Sequence record: PV611058.1 | Reading direction: 5' to 3' (one strand) | Length of the DNA: 64,000 nucleotides | Notes under the pieces: model-generated | Databases searched by the model: none | Told to the model about the DNA's origin: nothing | What the model saw: the letters and a program-made list of their open reading frames with translations, nothing else | Shown: in pieces, positions 42,902 to 62,918 of the stretch | Layout of the letters: every line of letters starts with the position of its first letter | Position numbering within the stretch: position 1 is the stretch's first letter | Program-made: the position numbers and the translations under genes

Positions 42902-42985
42902 GGATACACCTATGCACCCTGTGGGCTAGTTTTTGTCTATGCGTATATAATAGCAAAGGGACTGACCGGAGTCAATCCCTTTTTT
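42902..42985 (-). ncRNA. family-1 promoter-driven two-hairpin RNA element
   Basis: TTGACT-N17-TATTAT then ...CTA-GCCC-ACA-GGGT-GC-ATAGGTGTATCC; no ORF. Confidence 0.55.
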
Positions 42986-42997
42986 TATTCTTTTTTG

Positions 42998-43198
42998 TTA
43001 GATGATTCTCCAATCATCAACGATCATGGTAAGATACCGAACCAGTGATTCGAGTGATTCGTGTTCTCGATAGTCTGCCGCTCCACCAGCGGTACAAGTA
43101 CAGCCGATTAAGCCGTTTTGTAGTTCCTGGATCTTTACGTCGATCTGGTTGGCTTTAGCTTCTTTCAGTACTTCAACCAGGGCGATAGCGATAGACAT
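42998..43198 (-). CDS. small hypothetical protein
   Basis: own cassette, GGAG RBS. Confidence 0.7.
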   Translation of the reverse strand: MSIAIALVEVLKEAKANQIDVKIQELQNGLIGCTCTAGGAADYREHESLESLVRYLTMIVDDWRII

Positions 43199-43288
43199 AA
43201 TGTTTTACTCCAAACTATTGGCGGGAGAACTATTCCCCCGCTCTATGTAAAACATTATACATTACTGGTTAGTACTGTCAAATAGTTT

Positions 43289-43546
43289 TTATGAAATATC
43301 TTCGATGTAGTCGGCCCATTTCATTTTTTCAGTACTGTCAATGGCTACCGGATTATTTGGATCAAACCATTCACCATCACCGCAATACATACCCACGGCT
43401 ACGGTTTTATAGCCATCCTGGGCCGTACACCACGACATTGCACGATAGATATGGCCTTTAACTGGTTGCAGTACTGGTAACGTTTTATGGTCTTCTACGT
43501 AGGCCATAGCTTGAGGATTTACCCGATATTGTGTGAACTGATCCAT
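43289..43546 (-). CDS. small hypothetical protein
   Basis: own promoter, AGGGG RBS. Confidence 0.7.
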   Translation of the reverse strand: MDQFTQYRVNPQAMAYVEDHKTLPVLQPVKGHIYRAMSWCTAQDGYKTVAVGMYCGDGEWFDPNNPVAIDSTEKMKWADYIEDIS

Positions 43547-43622
43547 TATGTTTCCCCTTGTAGTTAGTAAAGTTATTACATCAGTACTATCAAGCTATGT
43601 CAATAGTACTGAAATAAAACTT

Positions 43623-43847
43623 TTAGATTAGATTATTGAGGCCGTCAATGGTAGACTCACTTTCTTCTTTCTCCCATTGTCGGTAGTACTTCCATGCTTC
43701 ATGATAGGTGGCGATTAGTTCATCTTTTTGATCCTGGTTACATGCCAGTACTGAATCACGGTGAGCGGTGTTATAGATAGAATCGAATGATTTCTTCTCT
43801 TCTGCCAGGTTAGCTACTTCCCGCATCAGTTCATCAAAGTTAGCCAT
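43623..43847 (-). CDS. small acidic helical protein
   Basis: own cassette, AAGGAG RBS. Confidence 0.7.
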   Translation of the reverse strand: MANFDELMREVANLAEEKKSFDSIYNTAHRDSVLACNQDQKDELIATYHEAWKYYRQWEKEESESTIDGLNNLI

Positions 43848-43914
43848 TTTATTACTCCTTTTAGTGGGGGAGGATATCTCCCCCTATGCAAAACATTATA
43901 CTTTGTTTTAGTTA

Positions 43915-44178
43915 TTATGCAAGTACTTTTTTCATATAAACATTAAATTCTACACCGCCGTAACCTTCCACGATGATATGTTTTGCGTTATCACGTTTGC
44001 ACATAGTGAAACCATCGTTTACGTGTTTTGCATTTTCCAGGGCGACATCACCGATAGCGGCACATACGGCACTAATAACAGTATTCCGCAAAGTACTGGT
44101 ATCATTGGCGGTCATAGTAGTTTGCAGTACTACGTTGTCGTATACGTGTGCATTGATAGTGATTTCGATAGTGTTCAT
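43915..44178 (-). CDS. hypothetical protein
   Basis: start moved to MNTIE (AGGAG RBS). Confidence 0.7.
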   Translation of the reverse strand: MNTIEITINAHVYDNVVLQTTMTANDTSTLRNTVISAVCAAIGDVALENAKHVNDGFTMCKRDNAKHIIVEGYGGVEFNVYMKKVLA

Positions 44179-44265
44179 GGTGTATCTCCTGGACTTGAGG
44201 GGAAACCATTTCCCCCTCTCGATATAAAACATTATACGTTAATCTAACTACAATGCAAGTACTTT

Positions 44266-44457
44266 TTAAATTTTATTTCCGATATAGTCCGGCATGTTCT
44301 TTTCAGTCATACGCTTTGCTAATGTCTGCATATGGCTTATAGCGTTCAAGGTGTCTTCCTCCAGGGATGAATCAAGATAATCAGGATCATTCTTCACCTT
44401 GCAATGATTATGATATCGTAGTACTGCCAGTACTTTTTTAACTTCTTCAACTGTCAT
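44266..44457 (-). CDS. small hypothetical protein
   Basis: overlaps stop of upstream gene. Confidence 0.65.
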   Translation of the reverse strand: MTVEEVKKVLAVLRYHNHCKVKNDPDYLDSSLEEDTLNAISHMQTLAKRMTEKNMPDYIGNKI

Positions 44458-44726
44458 AATAAGTACCCCACTTCGTTAGCTTTCAGGTTAGTATCAATCA
44501 TCAGTGGATTTTTGTAGTTCACAAAACGAGTAGTTTTCTCGATAGCGAAACCCATATAATCCAGCTTACTAACAGTACATTCATTCTTAAAAACTTCTTT
44601 CGCTGCATCGATGGCTGATTGCATGGATAACCGCCCATCTAAGTTAATATTTCCAAATGATCCACCAGCAGAAGTAGGATTACCGTTCATATCTTTAATG
44701 ATCATAGTAGCGGAGTAGCTGGACAT
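44454..44726 (-). CDS. small hypothetical protein
   Basis: own cassette, AAGGA RBS. Confidence 0.7.
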   Translation of the reverse strand: MSSYSATMIIKDMNGNPTSAGGSFGNINLDGRLSMQSAIDAAKEVFKNECTVSKLDYMGFAIEKTTRFVNYKNPLMIDTNLKANEVGYLL

Positions 44727-44815
44727 AATTTTGTTTCCTTTTATTGGTGTGGGGAGAACTATTCTCCCCTTGATGTAAACTATTATACAGTACTGATATA
44801 CTTTGTCAAATACTT

Positions 44816-45223
44816 TTATTCGCCCATATAGATTAGATTATCATCGCCTACATAGGGATCGCAAACGTTGATTTCTTCGCAGTACTTCGTGAATACATCG
44901 CCATAGTGACCTAAACCACGATCCCAAAAACCAGTTCCGTGACCTTCGCGGGTAAGGAACAGATCATGACCAGCTTGCTCATAACCGTAATCAATAAACA
45001 TACCGCGAACTACTTCCAGATCATTACCGTGTTTCTCAATGAAGCGAGAACATGCAATCACTGCCGCTTGATGGGCTTGCTCTGATAATTCATAATCTTC
45101 CAGGTAATCGCCGTTCTCATTGTGTACAGTACTGAATTGCATAGCTTCAATGTAAGCTACAACCATTGCAGCATGATTTTTATCGTTAGTGATGTTCCGA
45201 GCGAGATTAGTAGTAGTAGACAT
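44816..45223 (-). CDS. conserved phage hypothetical protein (GHDLFLTREGHGTGFWDR motif)
   Basis: motif pattern recurrent in phage proteins of unknown function; own cassette. Confidence 0.75.
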   Translation of the reverse strand: MSTTTNLARNITNDKNHAAMVVAYIEAMQFSTVHNENGDYLEDYELSEQAHQAAVIACSRFIEKHGNDLEVVRGMFIDYGYEQAGHDLFLTREGHGTGFWDRGLGHYGDVFTKYCEEINVCDPYVGDDNLIYMGE

Positions 45224-45306
45224 GATTTTATTCCTTATTGTATTGGGGAGAACTATTCTCCCCTTGATGTAAACTATTATACAGTACTGATATACTTTGT
45301 CAATAC

Positions 45307-45528
45307 TTAATTACGTTTAAAATGATATGTGCCTTTATCATCCTGTACGCCCCATACTGATTTACCATCAACACCAGTGAAACCGGATTGTAATTCAATA
45401 TGGAAACCATTATTATCAACTACAAAAACTTTTTTATTTTCATCCCGATAACATTGATATTCTGAATCAACATTAAAGGCCGCATCATTCAGTAGATTGG
45501 AAGCGTAAATGCAAGTCATTGTAGTCAT
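45307..45528 (-). CDS. small hypothetical protein
   Basis: own cassette, AAGGA RBS. Confidence 0.7.
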   Translation of the reverse strand: MTTMTCIYASNLLNDAAFNVDSEYQCYRDENKKVFVVDNNGFHIELQSGFTGVDGKSVWGVQDDKGTYHFKRN

Positions 45529-45650
45529 GATTTTATTCCTTATTGCCAGGGAGAACCGTTCCCCCTCTCGATATAAAACATTATACTTGATTCTAAGTAC
45601 AATGCAAGTACTTTTTAAAAAATAGTTTTCAGTACTGAATACTTATATAA

Positions 45651-45740
45651 TAGATACACTTCCGCACCCTATGGGTCAGTGAGTTATCTCTCAATGGATA
45701 TATAATAGCAAAGGGACTGACCGGAGTCAATCCCTTTTTT
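45651..45740 (-). ncRNA. family-1 two-hairpin RNA element
   Basis: TTGACT-N17-TATTAT; GAG-AGATAA-CTC-ACTG-ACCC-ATA-GGGT-GC-GGAAGTGTATCTA. Confidence 0.6.
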
Positions 45741-45748
45741 AATCTTTT

Positions 45749-46333
45749 TTATCGTGTTACCTTACTTGCTGCCACATCACGCTTTTTATAGTACTGATTC
45801 CAGATATTGCTGGTTAAACCGTAATCAAGTACTTTAATAAGTCCATTACGATCCTGGCCGATATTCTGTTTTCTGATATCTCTTATCGTTAGTGTTGATA
45901 ATGTATCATCAACGTGTTGTAGTGCATCAGCAAAGCGGTGCTGGCGTTCGATTGCATTACGTTTAATATTGTACTTTAATTCATTGCACGCGTTTACGTG
46001 CTTCACACTACCTTTGCTTGCAGTACTCAACCGATCCATAACGATAAACATATTATCAGGATCGCATAAATGCATATGCACCTTTGCAAAGTACTGTTTC
46101 AACTGAGGGCGGTCATAGTCTAAAAAATTCCATACCTTACATTCAGTTTCATTTTGTTCTACACCCGCATCACAATTCGCGACCTTAATCACTAACCGAT
46201 CATTTAAAGCGAAAACTATACGGGAAGAACCAGCACCGATGATCTCCAGGCCAGCTAACCGACAAGCTGAAAGGATCTCTTTGTTGGTTTCCATTTCTGA
46301 CAGTGTACGGATGAATTTAGTATAATTACGCAT
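45749..46333 (-). CDS. putative Ser/Thr protein kinase (minimal kinase fold)
   Basis: IGAGSSRIVF (Gly loop), VIKVA (catalytic Lys), QNETE (helix C Glu), RDIRKQNIG (catalytic loop), VLDYG (DFG-like); start moved to MRNYT (AAGGAG RBS). Confidence 0.75.
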   Translation of the reverse strand: MRNYTKFIRTLSEMETNKEILSACRLAGLEIIGAGSSRIVFALNDRLVIKVANCDAGVEQNETECKVWNFLDYDRPQLKQYFAKVHMHLCDPDNMFIVMDRLSTASKGSVKHVNACNELKYNIKRNAIERQHRFADALQHVDDTLSTLTIRDIRKQNIGQDRNGLIKVLDYGLTSNIWNQYYKKRDVAASKVTR

Positions 46334-46364
46334 TGCATGTTCTCCTTGAGTTAATGAAACTATA

Positions 46365-46607
46365 TTACAGTACTTTACTATCAATGGCAACTACTTTTTT
46401 AACATTAACGGCGTGGATCACTTCCTTCGTGTTTTTAGTACTGAATACTTTCGCCGCTCCTTGTTCGACCGTGATACGATAGCGACCATTAACATCAACC
46501 ATATTAATAAAGTCCGGCGTGCTGAATGGTGTTGTTTTACATTTGAGTACTGTTAACAGTTCCACCAGCGATGTAGTTTCTTTGATACGTTTTTCTAAAG
46601 TAATCAT
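46365..46607 (-). CDS. small hypothetical protein
   Basis: start moved to MITLE. Confidence 0.65.
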   Translation of the reverse strand: MITLEKRIKETTSLVELLTVLKCKTTPFSTPDFINMVDVNGRYRITVEQGAAKVFSTKNTKEVIHAVNVKKVVAIDSKVL

Positions 46608-46664
46608 TTTGTTTCCCCCGTGTTGGTATGTACATATAGTACTAAAACATTTGAGTACTGTCAA

Positions 46665-46883
46665 TTAGATAATATTATATTTCTTAAAATAAAATGCGTC
46701 CTGTGTTGGTTGATACTCGATACCGTTACCGTTATTGACTTCAACTAATAAACCTTTGTCAATTAGTTTTTTAATAGTACGATACCCTTGTTGAAAATTG
46801 GTAAAATGTGAATCATTACGAAAGGTATAACCGTGCTTAACTGCTTCATCAATAGTTTTCTTTTCGATTTTAGATAATTTCAT
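46665..46883 (-). CDS. small hypothetical protein (possible winged helix)
   Basis: start moved to MKLSK; TIKKLIDKGLLVEV...YQPT pattern suggests wHTH. Confidence 0.6.
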   Translation of the reverse strand: MKLSKIEKKTIDEAVKHGYTFRNDSHFTNFQQGYRTIKKLIDKGLLVEVNNGNGIEYQPTQDAFYFKKYNII

Positions 46884-46936
46884 TTTGTTTCTCCCGTGTT
46901 GGTATGTGTACATAATACTAAAACATTTGAGTACTG

Positions 46937-47191
46937 TCAACGTGATATTAGTTTTATTTTCTTATTGTATTGTTGATGCTCATAAAGGTTTATCTTTCCT
47001 GTGTTCTCGATTACTATCCTGTTGTTAGTGTCCACGTCGATTACACGCAGTTTACCGTTGCTTAACTTCCTAGGTAATAGGTTACCATTAATAAACTCAT
47101 TAGCAAGCTGTACGGCCTTTGTGATGATTCTCTGAGGTGCTTTATAGTGTACCCGTAAGATGTTATCTTTATATAGTTGAACCTTAATCAT
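46937..47191 (-). CDS. small basic hypothetical protein
   Basis: 84 aa, AGGA RBS. Confidence 0.65.
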   Translation of the reverse strand: MIKVQLYKDNILRVHYKAPQRIITKAVQLANEFINGNLLPRKLSNGKLRVIDVDTNNRIVIENTGKINLYEHQQYNKKIKLISR

Positions 47192-47204
47192 TTTGTTTGT
47201 CCTA

Positions 47205-47232
47205 TAAAAAAGGCGGGAACTGATCCCGCCGT
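47205..47232 (-). terminator. intrinsic terminator
   Basis: GGCGGGA-tcagt-TCCCGCC plus T6. Confidence 0.7.
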
Positions 47233-47252
47233 GTTGTTAGTACTGCAAGTTA

Positions 47253-47648
47253 TTAGATAACCTGGCGGCGTTTACTGTATACTGTTACACGATTACCCTT
47301 ACGATCATGTCGGATCTCTTTCTGGTTGCGAATCAGTTCACTTGGACGCTTAAGGTTTGCCAGGTGATCCGCGTGAGTCCATGCGGTGTGGTTTACCTGT
47401 ACTTTGATATCAGAATCAGCGATAAACTCATCTTGTGCGTCAAGTATTGCCGCCAGCATATCCGCTCGTTTTAGTTCTGCTGCTGTCAGTACTGGCTCAG
47501 GTGAATTCACAATATCAGAGATTTCTTTGAACTGTACGGCCCAGCGTTGACCTTTCGGTGCATCTTTGCCCATGTCTTTAAATGCTGCTCCTTCCTCGCG
47601 TGCAACAATACGGGCAGCTTCACGGGTAGCGTAGAATTTAGTAATCAT
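47253..47648 (-). CDS. hypothetical protein (paralogue of 61213..61479)
   Basis: FYATREAAR...FKDMG...GQRWAV and DRKGNRVTVY shared with 61213..61479. Confidence 0.75.
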   Translation of the reverse strand: MITKFYATREAARIVAREEGAAFKDMGKDAPKGQRWAVQFKEISDIVNSPEPVLTAAELKRADMLAAILDAQDEFIADSDIKVQVNHTAWTHADHLANLKRPSELIRNQKEIRHDRKGNRVTVYSKRRQVI

Positions 47649-47743
47649 GGTATACATCCTATTAGTTAAGTTAGTACTACAAGTTAGAGTCTATTATAAA
47701 GTACTATCTGGGCAATGTCAAATAGTACTTTAAATGGATTCTA

Positions 47744-48067
47744 TTACATGTCTTTCTTACGTTTTACATCGTAGTAGCGAACTGTAATTTCTTTGTTGAT
47801 CTCTTTCTCAATTCTGTGTAGTACTTTCTCTTTCGGGTTGAAACCTATTACAGTTTCCTTAATGATTTCTAAACCCGTGTACTCGCCTTGTGTGCCGTAA
47901 CCGTATGTAAAGGTTTCGTGTCCCAGGTCTTCCCAGCGATCACCAATCAATGCGGACACGTAGCAGGAGTGGTAAGTATTGCCGTGGCTATCAGTCCACC
48001 GATTAACTTTAATGTCAAAGGAGGTTACAATTTTCAGTTCTACTTTCTGGGTAAGGATCATAGCCAT
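47744..48067 (-). CDS. hypothetical protein (paralogue of 55124..55447)
   Basis: RWTDSHGNTYHSC...TFTYGY shared. Confidence 0.75.
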   Translation of the reverse strand: MAMILTQKVELKIVTSFDIKVNRWTDSHGNTYHSCYVSALIGDRWEDLGHETFTYGYGTQGEYTGLEIIKETVIGFNPKEKVLHRIEKEINKEITVRYYDVKRKKDM

Positions 48068-48154
48068 TTTTATTTCTCTCTCTTTGTTAGGAGGGGAACC
48101 ATTCCCCTCGCTTGATGTAAACTATTATACAGTACTAAGATACTTTGTCAATAC

Positions 48155-48337
48155 TTATTTTTTGGAAAGTTTACGCATTAATTCTACGCTTTCTTGTGAA
48201 CGTTTTGCTACCTGGCAAGCTGTATGGGCAGTAAACATTTTTGTATAGTCTGACGCTTTGCCACCGAACCGAGCGGCACGTTCACGGGCACTTGGAACTA
48301 ATACTATTTCTTTATTACAGATAGTGCACTTAGCCAT
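48155..48337 (-). CDS. small putative zinc-binding protein
   Basis: CTIC...HTAC ligand pattern; own cassette. Confidence 0.7.
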   Translation of the reverse strand: MAKCTICNKEIVLVPSARERAARFGGKASDYTKMFTAHTACQVAKRSQESVELMRKLSKK

Positions 48338-48423
48338 TTTTATTTCTCTCTCTTTGTTAGGAGGGGAACCATTCCCCCTCTCGATGTAAACTATTATACA
48401 GTACTAAGATACTTTGTCAATAC

Positions 48424-48699
48424 TTAAGTATTGTAAATGTCGTGAATAGTGATAAAGTTTTTACGACCGTAAACATGTAAATCAGTATCAATGTAGTGCT
48501 TATCAAGTACATCCTCGACGCTTAAAGACGTGTCGTGAATATCTTCATAAAATTGTGGATCAACAATCGTGCTTAAGTCATCTGGCGTTAACTTATCGTT
48601 AAGGCATTGAACCGCCTGGATATCTGCTTCACGTTTCCATTGTTCCAGATTAGTAGTCAGTACTTGCTCGATTTCGTTAGCTGTAAGTAAAGTCCGCAT
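48424..48699 (-). CDS. small acidic hypothetical protein
   Basis: own promoter, AAGGA RBS. Confidence 0.7.
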   Translation of the reverse strand: MRTLLTANEIEQVLTTNLEQWKREADIQAVQCLNDKLTPDDLSTIVDPQFYEDIHDTSLSVEDVLDKHYIDTDLHVYGRKNFITIHDIYNT

Positions 48700-48768
48700 T
48701 TTAATGTTTCCTTATCAGTGGTTGATGTAAGTATTATACTCGTTTACTTTCTATTGTCAAACTATTTT

Positions 48769-48843
48769 ATCAGGGGAGTTTTTCGTATGTCTTACTCCTG
48801 GACTACTTAACGGGGTTACTTATTTCGTTCCCCGTCCTGATGT
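48769..48843 (-). ncRNA. family-2 structured RNA element
   Basis: own TTGCAT-N16-TATAAT promoter; ATCAGG/CCTGAT closing stem, two internal hairpins, loop AAGACATACGAAAA; no ORF. Confidence 0.55.
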
Positions 48844-48920
48844 AAAACATTATACTTGATTCTAAGTACAATGCAAGTACTTTTTTAAAAATAGTTTTCA
48901 GTACTAGCCACCAGCAAACA

Positions 48921-49005
48921 ATAGATACATTTATGCACCCTGTGGGCTGATTTGTTTCTATGCGTATATAATAGCAAAGGGACTGACCGGAGTCAATCCC
49001 TTTTT
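48921..49005 (-). ncRNA. family-1 RNA element
   Basis: TTGACT-N17-TATTAT; CA-GCCC-ACA-GGGT-GC-ATAAATGTATCTA. Confidence 0.55.
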
Positions 49006-49014
49006 CAAATATTT

Positions 49015-49164
49015 TTAAACTTCTTTCGGGTTGCGATATGTGATAGCGTTAGGGTACATTTGTTTAATGTTATTCCATGCCTGGTTAACATTATAACCAC
49101 TTGATCGAATCAGTTGGTTATTACCGACACCTTGAAACACTACTTCAAATAAGAATTCTTTCAT
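49015..49164 (-). CDS. small hypothetical protein (49 aa, below ORF-track cutoff)
   Basis: MKEFLFEVVFQGVGNNQLIRSSGY...; GAGG RBS; overlaps upstream stop. Confidence 0.55.
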   Translation of the reverse strand: MKEFLFEVVFQGVGNNQLIRSSGYNVNQAWNNIKQMYPNAITYRNPKEV

Positions 49165-49334
49165 GCTTTCACCTCGCTATCTGCTTTGCCTTTACGCCAG
49201 GCCGTTGCTAATTGTTCGCGTTGCCATAAGTCGAGTGATACGTAAAGTTTTGCATTATCACCCTTCGGATATTCGCCAGTAGTACCAATCCGATAAAACA
49301 GATCTTTCAGTACTGTTAATTCTACCTGGACCAT
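49161..49334 (-). CDS. small hypothetical protein
   Basis: start moved to MVQVE. Confidence 0.65.
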   Translation of the reverse strand: MVQVELTVLKDLFYRIGTTGEYPKGDNAKLYVSLDLWQREQLATAWRKGKADSEVKA

Positions 49335-51338: not shown

Positions 51339-51341
51339 AGA

Positions 51342-56552: not shown

Positions 56553-56571
56553 TGATTCAGTACTTTAATTG

Positions 56572-57054
56572 TTATGCTTCAACTTTGCGATGTGCTTCGA
56601 TCCATTCCTCGCGAGTCATACCACTGGAGTTAATCGCGTCCAGTACTACCGCAATGCAGTTACCACGCACCGGAATCAGATATTCTTCCCCGTTGTCCAG
56701 TACTACCGCTACGCGTTCCTGAATCCATTTTTTGGCTTTTACTTCTGGCTTGTCTTCCCCATACTTAACCGCCAGGGCTTTTTGTGCCATCTCTGTAACT
56801 ACTTCCAGATCCAATCCAACTACTGCCGCCTGAATACTTTCGATTGTTGCTTGTAGTTCTGCTTCACGGGCCGCCTTTGCCGCTTCAATTTCTGCCGCTT
56901 TATTTGCTTGTAGTTCTTTCGCAGTACTATAAGCGATGTTAAAATTATTGCGTACCGCTTTCATGGTATCGTTATCCAGTTCAGCCAGGATCTCAGCCGC
57001 GACGTTAGTTTCATTTGCTACCAGTGCTTTGATGAATGATTTTACATTAGCCAT
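56572..57054 (-). CDS. H-NS/StpA-like nucleoid-associated protein (divergent)
   Basis: coiled-coil N-half AAEIEAAKAAREAELQATIESIQAAVVGLD, basic linker, C-terminal DNGEEYLIPVRGNCIAVVLDAINSSGMTREEWI aligns by eye with H-NS [33 protein letters not shown]; start moved to MANVK. Confidence 0.5.
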   Translation of the reverse strand: MANVKSFIKALVANETNVAAEILAELDNDTMKAVRNNFNIAYSTAKELQANKAAEIEAAKAAREAELQATIESIQAAVVGLDLEVVTEMAQKALAVKYGEDKPEVKAKKWIQERVAVVLDNGEEYLIPVRGNCIAVVLDAINSSGMTREEWIEAHRKVEA

Positions 57055-57104
57055 TTTATAAATCCTCAATTAAAGTTTAGTTTACGTTTATTAGTGTATC
57101 AAAG

Positions 57105-57175
57105 TTTTCTCGACGTGTCCAGTTTTTCGTTCGACTTACTGGCGGTCTACTTAGTGCTCCCCGTCTTGATGTAAT
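57105..57175 (-). ncRNA. family-2 RNA element (leader of H-NS-like gene)
   Basis: ACATCAAGACGGGGA...TAAGTAG...CCAGT-AAGTCGAACGAAAA-ACTGG; promoter TTGACA-N16-TAGAAT. Confidence 0.5.
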
Positions 57176-57257
57176 ACATTCTACGCTTTTCTGTGGTAAT
57201 GTCAACTACTTTTTTAAAACTATTTTCAAAGTATCTCAGTACTACGATACTACAAAA

Positions 57258-57282
57258 ACAAAAAAGCCCACCAGGTGGGCTA
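57258..57282 (-). terminator. intrinsic terminator
   Basis: AGCCCACC-t-GGTGGGCT core plus T tract. Confidence 0.65.
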
Positions 57283-57287
57283 TGTAC

Positions 57288-57518
57288 TTAATCAGTGAGT
57301 AAAATATTAAACACTTTACCATTTAACGTTATTGGTGCACTGCTACCAGGCTCAAGATCCGTTAGTATACCTGCAATCGCTTTATCATTGGCTACCTTTC
57401 CAGTGTCCAACAGAACTACAGTACTGATAAGATTAACGCTCGTTTCAATATCATAATGCACGGCGTTAAGTAGTTGTGTAGTACTGCTTTCGTTAAGTAA
57501 AACAATTCGCTTAGTCAT
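57288..57518 (-). CDS. small hypothetical protein
   Basis: GGGG RBS. Confidence 0.65.
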   Translation of the reverse strand: MTKRIVLLNESSTTQLLNAVHYDIETSVNLISTVVLLDTGKVANDKAIAGILTDLEPGSSAPITLNGKVFNILLTD

Positions 57519-57539
57519 GATGTTACCCCGTAGTATCTA

Positions 57540-57839
57540 TCAACGGCAATTAATAACGCCGGTATGCGTTACTTTCTCAGTATCCATTACAGTGACCGAA
57601 CCGCGTTTAGTACTGGCATCATAATAAATTGTTGTGCTACCGTTTTCGTCTTCTTCATGGAACGGGCCGTTTTTAAATGCTTCCGGCTGGATCTCTAAAT
57701 CCTTTAATACAATCTCGCCAGTTCTTTCATCGGTCATTGCAACAGTGCACTGAATGAATTTTTCACTACTTACATCTAATGACGCATTAACAGCGAAAGA
57801 GGAAACAGATAAAGCCAGGGCGATGATTGCAATTTTCAT
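57540..57839 (-). CDS. putative exported protein
   Basis: signal-peptide-like MKIAIIALALSVSSFAVNA; two Cys. Confidence 0.7.
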   Translation of the reverse strand: MKIAIIALALSVSSFAVNASLDVSSEKFIQCTVAMTDERTGEIVLKDLEIQPEAFKNGPFHEEDENGSTTIYYDASTKRGSVTVMDTEKVTHTGVINCR

Positions 57840-57923
57840 TTGATTATCCTTAGTTACCAGGGGGAACCGCTCCCCCTTGCGATGTAAAATATTATACAGT
57901 ACTAAAAACTAATTGCAAGTACT

Positions 57924-58160
57924 TTATGATTTTTTATAAAACATTTCAGCAGTGATATTTTTACCCGTTGGCTGTACTTTATCCAGAATTTTTTGATGTC
58001 CAGGGCGACCAAATGAATATGATCCGTAAACCGTAAACCAGTAGTTGCCATCAGTGTTTACATGTACAGCACAATAGGGTACGCCCCGCGATTCATCACT
58101 AGTAAAGTGTGATACAGTTCCCGTTACATTCGCAGACGTTGATTTGATTTGTTCGAGCAT
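57924..58160 (-). CDS. small hypothetical protein
   Basis: own cassette, AAGGA RBS. Confidence 0.7.
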   Translation of the reverse strand: MLEQIKSTSANVTGTVSHFTSDESRGVPYCAVHVNTDGNYWFTVYGSYSFGRPGHQKILDKVQPTGKNITAEMFYKKS

Positions 58161-58269
58161 TTTCTTATTCCTTAGTTACCAGGGGAACCGCTCCCCCTAT
58201 GCAAAACATTATACGCGTTTAAAAACTAATTGCAAGTATTTTAATAAAAAGTATTTGAAAAAATAGTTG

Positions 58270-58352
58270 TTGACAAGTGCATCCAGTACTGGCATAATTA
58301 CTACATCAAGACGAAACAGTCACTAACCCACCGGGTGCCGAGATCCGTCTAT
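58270..58352 (+). ncRNA. family-1 two-hairpin RNA element (plus strand)
   Basis: TTGACA-N17-CATAAT; GAC-GAAACA-GTC-ACTA-ACCC-ACC-GGGT-GC; faces the bidirectional hairpin at 58377-58402. Confidence 0.6.
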
Positions 58353-58404
58353 TAAATGATTCAGTACTGAAAAAGTAACGGGGAGTTATTATCTCCCCGC
58401 GTTG

Positions 58405-58626
58405 TTATTTTGTAAGGTATAAACAGAAGTCGCCTTTATTTGCTACGCCGCCAGTGTAACGCGATGAATAGTTAGAAACGTCCTGGACTTCTGCTATTAC
58501 CAGGGTATCATCATTCAATTCGTCGCAGAAGCAAACGGCTGGATCTTGTACGCCGATTTTGTCAGCATGTTCCCGCATAGATTTCACCAGTGCTTCCAGT
58601 TGGGAAAGAGTAGTGATATTAGCCAT
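58405..58626 (-). CDS. small hypothetical protein
   Basis: start moved to MANIT (GAGGA RBS). Confidence 0.65.
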   Translation of the reverse strand: MANITTLSQLEALVKSMREHADKIGVQDPAVCFCDELNDDTLVIAEVQDVSNYSSRYTGGVANKGDFCLYLTK

Positions 58627-58710
58627 TGTATTTTCCTCATTACCAGGGAGAACCATTTCTCCCTTTGATGTAAACCATTATACAGTACTGAAAACTAATT
58701 GCAAGTACTT

Positions 58711-58899
58711 TTAATTAAATTCCATAAAATCATTTTCAACGTGCACAACAATCTGATTATTTTTAAAGGACGCAGAAAACTCTATACAATCATAAACCGC
58801 TTTTTCTGTTACCAGACTATGAGCACCAATCGGATTAATTGGGGATTGAATTGTTTCAATCTCGTTACCTTGTTCATTAACGATTAAAATATTAAACAT
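58711..58899 (-). CDS. small hypothetical protein
   Basis: AGGAG RBS. Confidence 0.65.
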   Translation of the reverse strand: MFNILIVNEQGNEIETIQSPINPIGAHSLVTEKAVYDCIEFSASFKNNQIVVHVENDFMEFN

Positions 58900-58938
58900 T
58901 GCCGTTACTCCTGGATAGTGTTAACTCGATATAAAGTA

Positions 58939-59121
58939 TTATACGCCTTTATTGCTTAGTGTCCAGTGATCACGCATCATACGCCCCGCACGATCCCAGC
59001 TAGTAGGCATGGGTATGCCTTGCAATTCGTTAGGGGAGATCTCGACCTCGATCCCTACATCAATAACAGTCATTCCAGCTTTCGCAGCTTGCTCGCGGAT
59101 AACCTCAGATAATGTTGTCAT
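58939..59121 (-). CDS. small hypothetical protein
   Basis: own promoter, AGGAG RBS. Confidence 0.65.
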   Translation of the reverse strand: MTTLSEVIREQAAKAGMTVIDVGIEVEISPNELQGIPMPTSWDRAGRMMRDHWTLSNKGV

Positions 59122-59195
59122 GATTAAAGCTCCTGGATAGTGTTAACTCGATATAAAGTATTATACAGTACTGAAAACTAATTGCAAGTACTTTT

Positions 59196-59456
59196 TCAAT
59201 ATTGTTTGTCGTTGTCTTCCTCGATGAATTGACCGACGAAATGATCTACTTTCGCTTTGAGGCTTTTATAATCTTCTTCTACTTCCTTTAAACGTTCCTG
59301 GTAGTATTCCAGGGCTTGAATATACGCCGCCTCAGCAGTTTTTGCACGCATAGCTAAATTCATTCCACGCGTTTCATCAAATAGCCAATAACCATCGGTG
59401 CAATGACTGATAGATAATGATTTACTTAGTACTGTATAGGCAATTACTTTACTCAT
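59196..59456 (-). CDS. small phage hypothetical protein
   Basis: GAGGG RBS; C-terminal coiled coil. Confidence 0.7.
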   Translation of the reverse strand: MSKVIAYTVLSKSLSISHCTDGYWLFDETRGMNLAMRAKTAEAAYIQALEYYQERLKEVEEDYKSLKAKVDHFVGQFIEEDNDKQY

Positions 59457-59513
59457 TAGATAACCCTCAGTAAAGGCGGGAACTATTACCCGCCATTATC
59501 TCAGTACTGAATA

Positions 59514-59753
59514 TTACATTCCAACCATTGCAGCACGGATCGCAGTAGTGCTATACTTAAAGCCGTCCGGCGTTGTAGTAGTACCGTTGGCTTTTAATCT
59601 GCGGTACATACATTCCGCAGCAATATCTTTAGTTCTACTTTGTGCGATGCAACTTTGAGCAAGCCGATACAATGACTCACCGTTATTAATCCAAAGGCTT
59701 ACATTCCAATGAGTTTTGTTTTTGTGTCCGTTGTAAGTTTTAGTACTAGCCAT
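59514..59753 (-). CDS. hypothetical protein (HWNVSLWINN motif; paralogue of 61566..61805)
   Basis: HKNKTHWNVSLWINN and PDGFKYSTTAIRAAMVGM shared; start moved to MASTK. Confidence 0.75.
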   Translation of the reverse strand: MASTKTYNGHKNKTHWNVSLWINNGESLYRLAQSCIAQSRTKDIAAECMYRRLKANGTTTTPDGFKYSTTAIRAAMVGM

Positions 59754-59843
59754 TTTTAAATCCTCGTTTGAGCGGGGAACCACTCCCCGCCTCGATATAA
59801 AGTATTATACGCTTTTAAACTTAGTTTGCAAGTACTTTTTAAA

Positions 59844-60455
59844 TTAATATTCGATTGATTCTACTACGCCATCAATAACATTGAATTGATACTCGTTACC
59901 CTCAATCAGTGCCGTAATGTTTTCAGTAGTGAATTGATCCTCATATGCATTCTCTAAATCACGGTACAACTTGCGGGACAATTCACGAATAGTTTCAGTG
60001 AGTAGTTCCTCAAGCTCATTAACTAACTTTTCTTGTTTTGCGGTTAAATCAGTGTAAGCCGATTCAATGTACCCGCTTACCGTGTTTTCGTGTGCGTAGC
60101 GAGAGTGTGAACGTTCTACACTCATTGCCAAATCATCTTCATTCAACAAGTGACGGATAGAACGATATTTCGTTAACGCTTTAATCTTGCGTAAAAACTT
60201 CACTGCGTCCACGTTGTCAGTACTGATTGATGCACCGTCACCTTGCGACCAAAAACCACTGTATTGCAATTCAGCTTCATCTATGCCGTATTCTGGTAGT
60301 ACTGTTTCTTTATAGTACTCGATAACGCCCTCAGCAAAGAAATTATCCTCACATGAACGCTCACGATCCCGAACCAGTTCGATAGCCGCCGTTTTTTGTT
60401 CTGCGTTCAGTTCAGAAAAAGCCATAACAAAAGTAGTAGTAGTGATAGTTTTCAT
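59844..60455 (-). CDS. conserved hypothetical protein (YSGFWSQGDGAS motif)
   Basis: motif recurrent in phage/plasmid proteins, from memory often labelled antitoxin-like; function not established here. Confidence 0.7.
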   Translation of the reverse strand: MKTITTTTFVMAFSELNAEQKTAAIELVRDRERSCEDNFFAEGVIEYYKETVLPEYGIDEAELQYSGFWSQGDGASISTDNVDAVKFLRKIKALTKYRSIRHLLNEDDLAMSVERSHSRYAHENTVSGYIESAYTDLTAKQEKLVNELEELLTETIRELSRKLYRDLENAYEDQFTTENITALIEGNEYQFNVIDGVVESIEY

Positions 60456-60523
60456 TTTGTAACCCTCATTCAGTAGTTGATGTAAGTATTATACGCTTTT
60501 ACTTTCTATTGTCAAACTATTTT

Positions 60524-60600
60524 ATCAGGGGAGTTTTTCGTGTGCCTTACTCCTGGGCTACTTAACGGGAAGTTACTTATTTCGTTCCCCGTCCTGATGT
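60524..60600 (-). ncRNA. family-2 structured RNA element
   Basis: near-copy of 48769..48843 with loop AAGGCACACGAAAA; own promoter. Confidence 0.55.
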
Positions 60601-60680
60601 AAAACATTATACGCCTTTAAACATAGTTAGCAAGTACTTTTTAAAAATAGTTTTCAGTACTGAATAGTAAAAAAAAAGTA

Positions 60681-60765
60681 TTGACAGCATTATCAAGTAC
60701 TGGCATAATAGCTACATAAAGACGAGAAAGTCACTAACCCACCGGGTGCATAACTGTAACTATAC
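60681..60765 (+). ncRNA. family-1 two-hairpin RNA element (plus strand)
   Basis: TTGACA-N17-CATAAT; GAC-GAGAAA-GTC-ACTA-ACCC-ACC-GGGT-GC. Confidence 0.6.
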
Positions 60766-60780
60766 TAAACTACTTTTTCT

Positions 60781-60860
60781 ATAGATACATCTCCGCACCC
60801 TATGGGCTACGGCTTATCTGCCAATGAATACATTATGCCAGTACTGACAAAATAAGTCAA
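60781..60860 (-). ncRNA. family-1 two-hairpin RNA element
   Basis: TTGACT-N17-CATAAT; GGC-AGATAA-GCC-GTA-GCCC-ATA-GGGT-GC-GGAGATGTATCTA. Confidence 0.6.
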
Positions 60861-60894
60861 TACCGGCAATTGTAAATTTTTCAAAAAAATATGA

Positions 60895-61125
60895 TTATAC
60901 TGCAATCGCGTCCAGGCTGTAATAATAATAAGTGCCGTATTGGTGTACTTTATTACCTTTTATTTCAGTACTGAATGAATCCGAACGATTTGCATATGAT
61001 GTTAATTTAAAGTACTTTGATTTGCTGATACGTTGCCATACACCACAGATCCGCTGTAAGTAAGTAGTTTTATTCGTGGTAGTATCTTTTACGGTTTTAA
61101 CTTCAGTCATATACATATTAGTCAT
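60895..61125 (-). CDS. small hypothetical protein
   Basis: own cassette, GGAG RBS. Confidence 0.7.
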   Translation of the reverse strand: MTNMYMTEVKTVKDTTTNKTTYLQRICGVWQRISKSKYFKLTSYANRSDSFSTEIKGNKVHQYGTYYYYSLDAIAV

Positions 61126-61212
61126 TTTTATTACTCCAGGTTATAGGCGGGAAGAGTTCCCGCTCTCGATGTAAAACATTATACGCCTTTAAACATAGTT
61201 AGCAAGTACTTT

Positions 61213-61479
61213 TTATTCAAGTACTGCAATCTTTTTAGTACGGTACACGGTCACGCGGTTGCCCTTTCGGTCGAGCTTTATTTCTACCACTCGACGCGAT
61301 ACACTATCGGGACTTTTTAAGGCCGCTAACCAGTACTGTAATGATCTGGCGGTACTACGCTTTACAATGGCCCAACGTTTACCACGTTCCGATTGTACGC
61401 CCATATCTTTAAACGTTGCCCCGTCCTGGCGTGCGGCGATCCGAGCTTGTTCACGCGTCGCAAAATACTTAATATTCAT
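61213..61479 (-). CDS. hypothetical protein (paralogue of 47253..47648)
   Basis: FATREQAR...FKDMG...GKRWAI; DRKGNRVTVY; start moved to MNIKY. Confidence 0.7.
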   Translation of the reverse strand: MNIKYFATREQARIAARQDGATFKDMGVQSERGKRWAIVKRSTARSLQYWLAALKSPDSVSRRVVEIKLDRKGNRVTVYRTKKIAVLE

Positions 61480-61565
61480 GCTGTTGCCCTTATCGTTGGT
61501 GTATGAATAAAACACTATTATAAAGTACTATCGCAAAAAAATGATAGTACTTTAAATAAATTCTA

Positions 61566-61805
61566 TTACATTCCAACCATCGCCGCACGGATCGCAGTAG
61601 TGCTATATTTGAATCCGTCCGGTGTTTTATCTTGTCCAGTCTGTTCTAAAAATAACATCATATGACGGGCCGCATCATTGCGATTAGTATTGGCGGCAAT
61701 AAAGTCCAGGGCCAACCGATACAATCCCTCATCGTTATTAATCCACAGGCTTACATTCCAATGAGTTTTGTTTTTGTGACCTAAGAACATTTTTGATTTA
61801 GCCAT
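61566..61805 (-). CDS. hypothetical protein (paralogue of 59514..59753)
   Basis: HKNKTHWNVSLWINNDEGLY; start moved to MAKSK (GAGGA RBS). Confidence 0.75.
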   Translation of the reverse strand: MAKSKMFLGHKNKTHWNVSLWINNDEGLYRLALDFIAANTNRNDAARHMMLFLEQTGQDKTPDGFKYSTTAIRAAMVGM

Positions 61806-61897
61806 TTTTTTAATCCTCTTATATAGTGGGGAACTATTCCCCACCTGATGTAAAACATTATACGCTTTTATTCAGTACTGTCAAACTAATTTTTAAC

Positions 61898-62260
61898 TTA
61901 TTCGTAAATTTTGCCACTGTCAGCCCATACCAGGAAACGAGGCATATTATCCCATGCATCTTGTTTTAAATTTAAACCGTGTAATACTTCTGTACTTTCC
62001 ATTCCTGGTACTGGTTTACTATACACCGCGAAATTTTCGCCCATATACTGATAAGCCATCGTCAAATCACTGGCGATCATCTTATGGATCATCGCATCAA
62101 GCATCACGGTGGCGGCGTATTGTTCACGCTTAAGCGGCAGCATTTTAATCAGTTCGCGGTATGCGTCAATGTGAGTTTTAACCGTTGCCGCCGGAAGATC
62201 TTTCATATCGTCGCGGAAGTTAACCAGGTTAGCAATGATTTTAGTGATTTGAGTCGCCAT
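61898..62260 (-). CDS. hypothetical protein
   Basis: own cassette. Confidence 0.7.
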   Translation of the reverse strand: MATQITKIIANLVNFRDDMKDLPAATVKTHIDAYRELIKMLPLKREQYAATVMLDAMIHKMIASDLTMAYQYMGENFAVYSKPVPGMESTEVLHGLNLKQDAWDNMPRFLVWADSGKIYE

Positions 62261-62374
62261 CGTTTTAATCTCTTAAAAGTGAGTAGGGAAGTGTTCCCGC
62301 TCTCGATGTAAAACATTATACGCTTTTTTCAGTACTGTGCAAGTACTTTCTACAAATACTTTTAAAATAGTTTT

Positions 62375-62466
62375 CTTTCTATATAGGAGTACTATTATTC
62401 AGTACTGAATCAATCCAGGGGAACTATCTTTCTATATAGGAGTACTATTATTCAGTACTGAATCAA
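62375..62466 (+). repeat. 39-bp direct repeat (2 copies), each with two AGTACT
   Basis: CTTTCTATATAGGAGTACTATTATTCAGTACTGAATCAA at 62375-62413 and 62428-62466. Confidence 0.9.
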
Positions 62467-62618
62467 CCAAATCACTACTACACCCCATAAAACGGCCTCA
62501 GACGCATTCTAACGCATTAATACACCTAAGCTATACATTTGCACCATTCTAATCATTCCAGGGCGTTACGGGCCGTTTAAACGCGTTGAATTATTTTCAA
62601 TTATTTTGTTTTTAGGTA

Positions 62619-62702
62619 TTGACTTGATCCTGAAAAAGCGTATAATTACTACATAGACGCGAGAAAGCGGATACCCCAGGGGGTGCGGAATTGTGCCCAA
62701 AA
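62619..62702 (+). ncRNA. family-1 RNA element (variant)
   Basis: TTGACT-N16-TATAAT; CGC-GAGAAA-GCG-GAT-ACCC-CAGG-GGGT-GC. Confidence 0.5.
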
Positions 62703-62834
62703 TTCAAGATATAAAAAAAGGATACACTCCCGCACCCTAGCAGGTAAACGCACTTTCTCAGTACTGAAATATAGTACCATAGTCCGGCCCAGGATAGCAA
62801 GCAAATTAATTAAAACTTTTTTGCTTCCAGGGTA

Positions 62835-62918
62835 TTGCTTTATTTTTTCAGTACTGTATAATAGTTCCATCAAGTCGAGAAAGACTCAAGCCCACCGGGT
62901 GCATAGTTACGCCCAAAA
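62835..62918 (+). ncRNA. family-1 RNA element
   Basis: TTGCTT-N16-TATAAT; AGTC-GAGAAA-GACT-CAA-GCCC-ACC-GGGT-GC. Confidence 0.55.

Follow-up and report, generated by a model that had tools for sequence, protein, structure and literature searches.

The window, a stretch of 64,000 nucleotides (PV611058.1), is the last 64 kb of the genome of Escherichia phage WPEC3 (Asteriusvirus). Positions 41498-64000 are its 22.5-kb direct terminal repeat (DTR), a field of about 50 small ORFan genes, each with its own repeated promoter, that is also packed with other DNA motifs such as AGTACT and Chi. All copies of the element described here lie inside the DTR (Table 1). A covariance model finds ten copies at E <= 1e-10, with scores of 51-71 bits and E values down to 8e-16. 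The next best hit in the 64 kb has E 1.9, and nothing lies in 1-41497. An eleventh copy (62714-62766, minus strand) is degenerate: it keeps the GAGAAA loop, GGGTGC and the tail, but its hairpin 2 is shifted and the model does not score it. A scan for the sigma70 consensus lists nine of the promoters at 10-11 of 12 matches.

Table 1. The DTR and its copies of the promoter-coupled RNA module. Positions are those of the 64-kb window; promoter entries are predicted from sequence; scores are from the covariance model.
Feature	Coordinates (strand)	Promoter	Model span	Bits	Description
DTR	41498..64000				Direct terminal repeat, 22.5 kb
Copy 1	42895..42982 (-)	42975; -35 TTGACT inside a terminator hairpin with UCCG loop (42955-42982); -10 TATTAT	42895-42941	58.8	CAT start; A-rich leader, no hairpin 1; hairpin 2 GCCC-ACA-GGGT; GC; tail GTGTATCCAAAAT
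Copy 2	45645..45737 (-)	45730; same terminator/promoter composite (45710-45737)	45645-45696	59.6	Hairpin 1 (T)GAG-AGATAA-CTC(A); hairpin 2 ACCC-ATA-GGGT; tail GTGTATCTAT, then AGTACT
Copy 3	48916..49003 (-)	48996; terminator/promoter composite (48976-49003)	48916-48962	55.6	A-rich leader, no hairpin 1; hairpin 2; tail; a Chi octamer directly follows
Copy 4	51250..51337 (-)	51337; TTGACA-17-CATAAT with TG	51250-51303	69.9	Hairpin 1 GACG-AGAA-CGTC; hairpin 2 ACCC-ATA-GGGT
Copy 5	53459..53551 (-)	53544; terminator/promoter composite (53524-53551)	53459-53510	61.9	Hairpin 1 (T)GAG-AGATAG-CTC(A); hairpin 2; tail; AGTACT
Copy 6	58270..58410 (+)	58270-58298	58304-58357	64.1	Antisense to the genes; complete unit with AGTACTG and bidirectional terminator 58379-58399 with a T-rich tail; predicted RNA about 100-105 nt
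Copy 7	60681..60768 (+)	60681-60709	60715-60768	71.2	Plus member of a convergent pair; hairpin 1 GAC-GAGAAA-GTC
Copy 8	60776..60860 (-)	60860-60832	60776-60826	51.5	Minus member of the same pair; hairpin 1 GGC-AGATAA-GCC; 47 nt between its GCACCC and the GGGTGC of copy 7
Copy 9	62619..62705 (+)	62619	62652-62705	55.2	Plus member of the end-proximal convergent pair; hairpin 1 CGC-GAGAAA-GCG; hairpin 2 variant ACCC-CAGG-GGGT; tail GTGCCCAAAAT
Copy 10	62712..62790 (-)	Weak or unclear			Degenerate variant, partner of copy 9; GGGTGC plus the tail form a hairpin followed by T7 (terminator-like, 62719-62738)
Copy 11	62835..62921 (+)	62835; weak -35 (TTGCTT), TG-extended perfect -10	62868-62921	59.5	Points at the physical genome end 1.1 kb away; hairpin 1 GTC-GAGAAA-GAC; tail ACGCCCAAAAT, then AGTACT

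A prior sequence-only reading had described about 11 promoter-driven, ORF-free two-hairpin elements with compensatory changes, and this observation is confirmed, as all 11 places hold the element. The positions it gave correspond to the low end of the tail for minus-strand copies and to the -35 box for plus-strand copies. Two corrections are needed. Two copies (42926- and 48947-) have no hairpin 1, only an A-rich single strand. The statement that no ORF follows holds for the immediate neighbourhood, but minus-strand copies are followed 30-100 nt later by the next gene's own promoter, and in two related metagenomic phages a copy sits 20-25 nt in front of an RBS and ATG.

The same model finds 8-13 copies per DTR region in ten other phages: G17, 121Q, SP27, RaK2, K64-1, GAP32, CBB, Munch, fENko-Kae01 and a Yersinia phage. 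The element is conserved in every enterobacterial RaK2-like jumbo phage tested. The model finds no copies in the unique parts of these genomes, nor in PA5oct (best E 0.43), XacN1, HK022, lambda, T4, T5 or E. coli genomes. Chance is excluded by the model scores, by conservation in ten other phages and by covariation. The family is undescribed: a covariance-model scan of 41000-64000 against Rfam 15 at E <= 1 gave three chance-level hits, none of them at an element, and neither GenBank annotation nor the literature describes it. Several GenBank records place 'hypothetical protein' calls over these elements.

We compared 85 distinct copies. All 85 have a sigma70-like promoter scoring 8-12 of 12 against the consensus, whereas a far-side control scores 5-9. 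The spacer is 17 bp in 64 copies, and the -10 box ends 5 nt before the C of a conserved CAT at the predicted start in 67. The first about 45 nt of the predicted RNA comprise a purine-rich stretch, usually displayed in the loop of a 3-4 bp covarying hairpin (GAGAAA, GCGAAA, AGAUAA), a CUA linker, a nearly invariant hairpin RCCC-AYN-GGGU followed by GC, and a UCUAU-type tail. The three hairpin-1 pairs are the three highest mutual-information pairs of the alignment, with about 15 different stem sequences and 95% pairing. The covariation score was reached by 0 of 500 shuffles, and slid controls give 8-55% pairing. Hairpin 2 (RCCC-N3-GGGU) is 98% paired. Since the large alignment was fitted to the model and the copies are related, these counts overstate the number of independent events. 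RNAalifold alone recovers only hairpin 2, because a fifth of the copies lack hairpin 1.

Wobble pairs in the paired columns are strand-specific, with 43 G-U against 1 A-C, which points to RNA of the promoter-sense strand rather than a DNA palindrome. The near-invariance of hairpin 2 would also be expected of a double-stranded DNA site for a dimeric protein (ACCC-N3-GGGT), with the RNA hairpins incidental, and the DTR contains other DNA motifs. We consider this very unlikely, however. In 35 of 85 copies G lies opposite T at the closing position, which breaks the DNA palindrome but keeps an RNA pair; hairpin 1 covaries without any sequence conservation in the stem; and orientation is always locked to a promoter.

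The copies occur in three recurring contexts: promoter-module-terminator units of about 100 nt antisense to genes, convergent pairs with fixed geometry, and co-directional copies behind terminator/promoter composites. About a third of copies are antisense to all genes, and many of these are promoter-module-AGTACT-terminator units with nothing downstream to regulate. This arrangement is conserved in the window (58270-58410), 121Q, RaK2, fENko-Kae01, CBB, the Yersinia phage and IMG/VR contigs. The ORF-free last 1.7 kb before the physical end carries three copies. An own promoter plus an intrinsic terminator with a U tail, as in Hfq-type trans-acting sRNAs, which are discrete RNAs of 50-300 nt, is present in the 58270-58410 unit and in at least nine units in relatives, but not in most other copies. 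The single-stranded parts, in which a seed might be sought, vary between copies.

Our tentative explanation is that the module itself is the product. What the sequence analysis establishes is a new family of promoter-coupled, non-coding structured RNA modules, confined to the about 20-kb terminal repeat of enterobacterial RaK2-like jumbo phages at 8-13 copies per repeat, and hence twice that per genome. Transcription from the predicted starts, early expression, action in trans and protein binding are all inferred. In this view, the module would be made in many copies by host RNA polymerase as soon as the terminal repeat enters the cell, and would work in trans as a sequence-specific binding handle for a protein, as a decoy, sponge or recruiter. 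Where a terminator follows, the product would be a discrete RNA of about 100 nt; elsewhere the same module would ride on the 5' end of longer early transcripts. Sequence-specific recognition rather than folding alone is suggested by hairpin 2, the first loop A, GC and UCUAU, which stay invariant across five genera while the neighbouring hairpin 1 covaries freely. The stems are too short to be stable alone, and single-sequence z-scores are only -0.4 to -2.4. The antisense units and the copies near the physical end argue for a trans-acting rather than a cis-acting element. Candidate partners are a host RNA chaperone, a ribonuclease, a defence sensor or a small phage protein, but the DTR proteins show no known RNA-binding or antiterminator domain. 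Contigs from public RNA runs break at the repeats and give no starts, ends or strand, so this explanation rests on sequence alone. Most copies have no terminator of their own, and co-directional copies could simply be leaders of long early mRNAs.

The interpretation in the sequence-only reading, a multicopy early small-RNA system, is partly supported. The element is indeed a real, multicopy, promoter-coupled, ORF-free structured element with compensatory changes; it behaves as RNA of the promoter-sense strand and is not a described family. At least one window copy (58270-58410) and many copies in relatives are compact promoter-module-terminator units of about 100 nt, and 'small-RNA system' fits those copies. 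It is not shown that all copies give discrete small RNAs, and early expression is inferred from the sigma70 promoters and the DTR position. None of the three roles it proposed is shown: the put-like reading fails tests of homology and size, the R-loop idea has no support, and the decoy, which we also favour, rests on inference only.

A cis-acting co-transcriptional leader, one of the two main rivals together with a PeSL-like cassette, is possible but unlikely. In this scenario, which resembles lambda nut or HK022 put, the nascent module would bind RNA polymerase directly, or through a small phage or host factor, and change elongation (antitermination, anti-Rho) of transcripts from a subset of DTR promoters. 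The module is strictly 5'-terminal at fixed spacing from four different promoter contexts, its hairpin-1 loops are GNRA-like and purine-rich as in boxB, co-directional copies sit at the head of multigene units just behind strong terminators, and the DTR encodes two DksA/TraR-type polymerase-binding proteins. On the other hand, antisense copies run into a strong conserved terminator about 20 nt after the module and have nothing behind it to read through, and the terminators bounding the units would be pointless if they were bypassed. No conserved boxA-like block appears in the 85-sequence alignment, where the conserved blocks are CUA, hairpin 2, GC and UCUAU. The loops GAGAAA, GCGAAA and AGAUAA sit on a 3-4 bp covarying stem in about 80% of copies and are absent in the rest. 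Pfam and PHROGs scans of 52 DTR ORFs found no N or Q family, although a novel small protein cannot be excluded.

About as unlikely is a regulatory and recombination cassette of the PeSL (promoter-early stem-loop) type. The repeats would then be promoter-plus-leader modules that flank small early genes and mediate modular shuffling, the leader giving the RNA only a protective or insulating 5' structure, and ORF-less copies would be cassettes whose gene was lost. Four of the 11 window copies are fused to a terminator stem-loop that contains the -35 box, a composite terminator/early promoter as defined for PeSLs (PMC4122927); the others have plain promoters. The copies lie between small ORFan genes, and, without a systematic mapping of junctions, copy number and subtype are seen to vary between close relatives: WPEC3 has 10-11 copies, G17 has 9, and a wastewater relative lacks the 60737(+) copy. 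The two copies in relatives that directly precede an ORF also fit this reading. However, neutral remnants would not keep covarying pairs and an invariant hairpin 2 across five genera, the conserved convergent pairs and promoter-module-terminator units have no gene to serve, and the 5' single strand of 4-14 nt is long for a protective 5' hairpin.

Primer RNAs for R-loop replication origins, as at T4 oriF and oriG, with convergent pairs serving as bidirectional origins, are very unlikely. The replication machinery of the RaK2-like phages is reported to be T4-related (the CBB paper compares CBB against the T4 replisome components; PMC5259590). The modules have a strong promoter with an AT-rich region downstream, occur on both strands, and form convergent pairs about 1 and 3 kb from the genome end in several genera. 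But ten or more origins per 20 kb is implausible, many copies end at a terminator about 100 nt downstream, there is no turn in cumulative GC skew anywhere in the window, and nothing in the module is known to favour persistent hybrids.

A more far-reaching possibility, which we regard as speculative and rather unlikely, is that RaK2-like jumbo phages use the first DNA to enter the cell to fire 20 or more strong host promoters that make no protein but a conserved 35-45 nt RNA ligand. This would be an immediate-early RNA countermeasure that titrates or redirects a specific enterobacterial RNA-binding protein or defence sensor before any phage protein can be translated, with the convergent pairs adding a built-in antisense or dsRNA control. 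If the partner is a host defence or RNA-metabolism protein, the module would be a new type of RNA-based takeover or counter-defence tool. The family would add a well-supported structured RNA to a phage group in which more than 80% of genes are unannotated and no regulatory RNA is known, and it gives a concrete, mutable 45-nt handle for asking how a 350-kb phage takes over E. coli in the first minutes. It also suggests that the long terminal repeats of these phages are dense arrays of host-directed signals (promoters, RNA modules, Chi, AGTACT) and not only ORFan gene fields, and it corrects existing annotation.

Several known systems share features with the module. Phage RNA decoys such as pseudo-ToxI and the Racr RNA anti-CRISPRs are likewise multicopy, short, structured RNAs whose only conserved part is a protein-binding hairpin, a role that is only inferred for the present module. 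Those decoys mimic a known host repeat, whereas no host sequence resembles this module, as there is no BLAST match in 5,426 E. coli genomes. The put RNAs of HK022 are ORF-free two-hairpin RNAs made just downstream of early host-polymerase promoters of a coliphage, as predicted for the present module, but put is about 65-70 nt with long stems and occurs in two copies that act in cis on read-through, suppressing downstream terminators through the beta-prime zinc-binding domain. Context argues against such action here, because a terminator follows directly behind many copies. The present module is about 35-45 nt with 3-4 bp stems, is present 10-11 times, is often followed by a working-looking terminator, and has no model match in HK022. 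Lambda nut sites resemble about 80% of the copies in having a short hairpin with a purine-rich GNRA-like loop and a freely variable stem near the 5' end of transcripts, here inferred to be early, and likely read by a protein. Here, a second, invariant hairpin is the core, a fifth of the copies lack the boxB-like hairpin altogether, and there is no match in lambda. ncRNA001 and ncRNA002 of the distantly related Pseudomonas jumbo phage PA5oct (PMC7318152) are abundant ORF-free transcripts from a long DTR whose genes are highly transcribed early, showing that such repeats can make non-coding RNAs. They are 236 and 451 nt, single copy, have no known promoter, and do not match the module in sequence or structure. 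The PeSL cassettes of T4-like phages (PMC2839356, PMC4122927) are repeated units of about 50-100 bp with a near-consensus sigma70 early promoter and a stem-loop, sitting between small ORFan genes in hyperplastic regions of T4-related myoviruses. They are defined by the stem-loop upstream of the promoter, whereas the conserved, covarying part of the present family is predicted to be transcribed, lies downstream of the promoter, and occurs without any gene, on both strands, in convergent pairs and only in the terminal repeat; in the four window composites the -35 box lies inside the terminator hairpin. Finally, in convergent-promoter antisense pairs (ColE1 RNA I/RNA II, P22 ant/sar), as in the convergent pairs described here, two promoters face each other about 70-110 bp apart and give fully overlapping short RNAs, here predicted from sequence. 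In the present pairs, however, both partners carry the same module, no gene or replication primer is controlled, and the geometry, with 47 nt between the cores, is conserved across genera.

Window 42000-50000 is 100% identical to Escherichia phage WPEC3 and 95-99% identical to other Asteriusvirus jumbo coliphages such as G17, fEgEco12 and Sharanji. Mapping against the WPEC3 record showed that the 64,000 nt end at the end of the record, and that their last part is the right-hand copy of a 22.5-kb direct terminal repeat (DTR), being identical to record positions 1-22503. Published relatives have DTRs of 20-22.5 kb confirmed by PhageTerm or restriction mapping (PMC13070987, PMC5259590). The DTR carries about 50 small minus-strand ORFs, almost all without known function, and dozens of repeated sigma70-type promoters. 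Among the products that can be assigned by similarity are two DksA/TraR-type zinc-finger proteins (RNA-polymerase secondary-channel binders), a ParE-like toxin domain, a GNAT acetyltransferase and a weak kinase-like hit.

The sequence-only reading reported a repeated two-hairpin element at eleven places, and all eleven hold the element, so the observation stands. We built a covariance model (R1) from ten copies, with hairpin 1 and hairpin 2 as the given structure. A MAFFT alignment (A3) misplaced hairpin 1, and a different alignment (A2) was therefore used as the seed. With filters off, R1 scores exactly those ten copies at 51-71 bits (E 1e-10 to 8e-16); the next hit in 64 kb has E 1.9, and nothing lies outside the DTR. 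The eleventh copy is a degenerate variant. Each element consists of a -35 box, a 17-bp spacer and a -10 box, followed after 5 nt by a conserved CAT whose A is the predicted start. There follow a purine-rich stretch, usually in the loop of a 3-4 bp hairpin, a CTA-type linker, RCCC-AYN-GGGT and GC, and then four variable bases and a TGTATCTAT, TCCGTCTAT or GYGCCCAAAAT tail. In two window copies hairpin 1 is replaced by an unstructured A-rich leader. The coordinates of these and other features are collected in the table below.

R1 finds nine copies in each DTR of G17 and none in the 330 kb between them. Copies were also found in 121Q, SP27 and Salmonella phage Munch (10-11 each, in one cluster of ~20 kb), Klebsiella phage fENko-Kae01 (10 per DTR; annotated DTR 1-19736), Yersinia phage fHe-Yen9-04 (about 10, in the first 12 kb), RaK2 (8, one cluster), K64-1 (9, one cluster), GAP32 (13, one cluster) and CBB (12 per DTR; annotated DTR 1-22456). 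The model finds nothing in Pseudomonas phage PA5oct (best E 0.43), Xanthomonas phage XacN1, HK022, lambda, T4 or T5. Mimicry of a host sequence was considered, but a BLAST search of one copy against 5,426 E. coli genomes found no match. An exact-pattern scan of IMG/VR returned 56 stretches, of which only those on jumbo-phage contigs and on two shorter contigs (33 and 5 kb) carry full elements, the rest being chance matches. The family therefore belongs to the enterobacterial RaK2-like lineage, covering at least four named genera plus an unclassified Salmonella/Klebsiella phage group (Munch, fENko-Kae01), and within these genomes it occurs only in the terminal repeat. Copy number is polymorphic: G17 has 9 copies against 10-11 here, and a wastewater metatranscriptome contig of a related phage skips 114 nt at window 60666-60781, has 8 other letters instead, and so lacks the 60737(+) copy.

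We next asked whether the structure is real and whether it is RNA or DNA. The alignment holds 92 hits, of which 85 are distinct. The three hairpin-1 pairs take GC, CG, AU and UA in comparable numbers, with about 15 different stems, and 95% of cells are paired. Hairpin 2 is 98% paired; its closing pair splits into 44 A-U and 35 G-U, and a few Yersinia-phage and other copies have CCCU/AGGG or CCUU/AAGG compensations. No shuffle out of 500 reaches the observed covariation score or the observed paired fraction, and sliding the partner by 1-3 columns drops pairing to 8-55%. The three hairpin-1 pairs are the top three mutual-information pairs of the whole alignment, and a fourth flanking pair is likely. 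These numbers should be read with some caution, as the alignment was fitted to the model and the copies are paralogues and orthologues of one another. RNAalifold alone recovers only hairpin 2, and single-sequence folds are barely better than shuffles (z -0.4 to -2.4); the stems are thus too short to be stable by themselves. Wobble pairs are strongly strand-specific, with 43 G-U or U-G against 1 A-C or C-A. This is what a transcript of the promoter-sense strand predicts, and it contradicts a duplex palindrome; we consider a double-stranded DNA site very unlikely. Hairpin 2, the first loop A, GC and UCUAU stay invariant next to a freely covarying hairpin 1. Together with the short stems, this points to sequence-specific recognition, most simply by a protein. 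Single folds also suggested a third hairpin, in which GGGUGC pairs with the tail, and a loop-tail pseudoknot, but mutual information gives no support for either, and only the degenerate copy forms a terminator-like version. A mini-ORF in the tail (ATG-TAA, ATG TAT CTA TAG) is not conserved. A sigma-dependent or consensus-pause reading of GGGTGC-N5-TG was dropped, as the geometry does not fit a hairpin pause.

Every one of the 85 distinct copies has a sigma70-like promoter at the same place. Scores are 8-12 of 12, with 81 copies at 9 or more, whereas the same scan on the far side gives scores of 5-9. The spacer is 17 bp in 64 copies, and the -10 box ends 5 nt before the C of CAT in 67. At least three promoter contexts carry the same module: TTGACA-17-CATAAT with a TG extension; plain consensus promoters; and a compact composite in which the -35 box TTGACT forms the upper stem of a UNCG-tetraloop terminator hairpin of the upstream gene, with the T tract running into the -10 box. 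G17 annotates this hairpin as a terminator, and the composite is conserved, with a covarying outer stem, in CBB, GAP32, RaK2 and fENko-Kae01. It is PeSL-like, matching the definition of the PeSL cassettes of T4-like phages (PMC4122927). A PeSL-like cassette whose leader merely stabilises or insulates transcripts would explain the genomic setting and the turnover of copies. It does not explain the cross-genus conservation of ORF-less units or the geometry of the pairs described below, and we regard it as unlikely.

The copies occur in three contexts. In antisense solitary copies the order is promoter, module, AGTACT within 0-10 nt, and then a strong bidirectional terminator about 20 nt after the module. 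Such a unit in the window has a predicted RNA of about 100-105 nt, and the same unit recurs in 121Q, RaK2, fENko-Kae01, CBB, the Yersinia phage and several IMG/VR contigs. Convergent pairs come in two geometries. One has 47 nt between GGGTGC and the partner's GCACCC, and is represented by two pairs in the window, three each in CBB and GAP32, and one in the Yersinia phage. The other has a wider spacing, seen in fENko-Kae01, the Yersinia phage and IMG/VR contigs, that holds a Fur-box-like AATGATAATCATT. This near-consensus Fur-box core sits exactly between the two members of the pairs in several relatives, but not in the window's pairs. A pair lies about 1.0-1.3 kb from the genome end in WPEC3, CBB and fENko-Kae01. 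Finally, co-directional copies sit behind terminators and are followed 30-100 nt later by the next gene's own promoter. In two metagenomic relatives, however, a copy is followed directly by an RBS and the ATG of a homologue of the virion proteins CBB_38 and ENKO_037. This DTR-encoded protein of 178 aa has an Arg/Gly/Ser-rich N-terminus (GSRGSRNQG) and is annotated as virion-associated in CBB and fENko-Kae01; no homologue is found in this window, and a link between the module and this ORF was therefore rejected. Of the 83 distinct copies with enough flanking sequence to classify, 25 are in convergent pairs and at least 9 have the close terminator. Contigs assembled from public RNA runs (Logan), when compared with window 57500-63400, are fragmentary, break at the repeats, and show neither starts nor strand.

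Coordinates of features in the window and in relatives
Feature	Position	Strand	Remarks
DTR, right-hand copy	41498-64000		position 64000 is the end of the WPEC3 record
Degenerate copy	62714-62766	minus	terminator-like hairpin at 62719-62738
Copies without hairpin 1	42926; 48947	minus	A-rich leader
Antisense solitary unit	58270-58410		promoter, module, AGTACT, terminator
Convergent pair	60737/60807	plus/minus	47-nt geometry
Convergent pair	62673/62745	plus/minus	47-nt geometry
Terminator/promoter composites	42955-42982; 45710-45737; 48976-49003; 53524-53551		UNCG tetraloop; TTGACT in upper stem
Chi octamers	42860; 43083; 44662; 46562; 48908; 50156; 51106; 51616; 56435; 63396	minus	GCTGGTGG
Chi octamers	56497; 63408	plus	GCTGGTGG
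Second repeat family	42373-63651	minus	28 copies, e.g. 57880-57934
Tandem-repeat region	63090-63241 and 62690-63270		8-bp tandem repeats (CGTCTAGC- and CATCCAGC-type) and several CCCAAAAT(T/C)C repeats
Duplicated 38-nt block	62375-62466		
DksA/TraR-type proteins	50758-51012 and 52145-52354		by correspondence with WPEC3 CDS706 and CDS711
Run of 77 N	25074-25150		masked stretch or gap
Fur-box-like core	L073 (fENko-Kae01) 1043 and 7312; also L031, L081, L075 (relatives)		AATGATAATCATT
178-aa protein	L077 2122-2658; L122 12666-13202; L073 (fENko-Kae01) 14429-14962; L072 14240-14758 (all relatives)		

The DTR is rich in other repeated signals. The palindrome AGTACT occurs 148 times in the 22.5-kb DTR against 6.5 expected, and 119 times against 11 in the rest of the window (1-41497). 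It sits just upstream of -35 boxes (AAAAAGTACTTGCA), in promoter spacers (CAGTACTGGCATAAT) and 0-10 nt after about half of the modules. The enrichment is similar in CBB (143 in its DTR) and fENko-Kae01 (122), making AGTACT a candidate operator of a conserved early regulator. Chi octamers are strongly enriched and oriented in the DTR, with 10 on one strand and 2 on the other, against 1 in the other 41.5 kb, where chance predicts about 0.3 per strand. An inverted Chi pair lies about 600 bp from the physical end. CBB (7 against 2) and fENko-Kae01 (12 against 2, with an inverted pair at 484/496) show the same bias, suggesting protection of the linear ends from RecBCD. The second repeat family consists of gene promoters (AAAAAGTACTTGCA-N16-TATAAT) followed by a 5'-UTR hairpin, GGGGRA-N-TYCCCC, and then an RBS and a small ORF. 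The tandem repeats and the duplicated 38-nt block lie in the last 1.7 kb before the genome end, which is free of ORFs.

What the analysis establishes is the family, its structure, its promoter coupling, its restriction to the DTR, and its contexts; how it works, including any protein binding, is inferred from sequence alone. About a third of the copies would make RNAs with no gene and often nothing but a terminator behind the module, and these units are conserved across genera. So the module itself appears to be what selection maintains. We therefore tentatively favour a trans-acting, multicopy, protein-binding RNA with an as yet unidentified partner, acting as a decoy, sponge or recruiter. 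It would be made by host polymerase from 20 or more promoters per genome as soon as the repeat is in the cell, although the early timing is itself inferred from promoter type and from the behaviour of PA5oct DTR genes. A cis-acting nut/put-like leader would explain the strict 5' position and the boxB-like loops. It is hard to reconcile with terminators placed right behind the module, no N or Q homologue was found among the DTR ORFs, and the family has no homology to put or nut; we consider this explanation unlikely. Primers for R-loop origins fit poorly and are very unlikely. The sequence-only reading had inferred a multicopy early small-RNA system, with a decoy, an HK022 put-like RNA and R-loop primers as candidate roles, and this interpretation is only partly supported.

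The sequence-only reading did not recognise the element as a described family, and our searches agree. A scan of Rfam returned no family, the element is unannotated or overlaid by 'hypothetical protein' calls in all GenBank records seen, and it is not mentioned in the papers found on RaK2-like phages. We regard it as a previously undescribed form of phage early regulatory or non-coding RNA cassette, and make no claim of a categorically new mechanism. The nearest functional precedent is PA5oct, where two abundant ORF-free RNAs map to the DTR (PMC7318152), but they are unrelated in sequence to the family described here.
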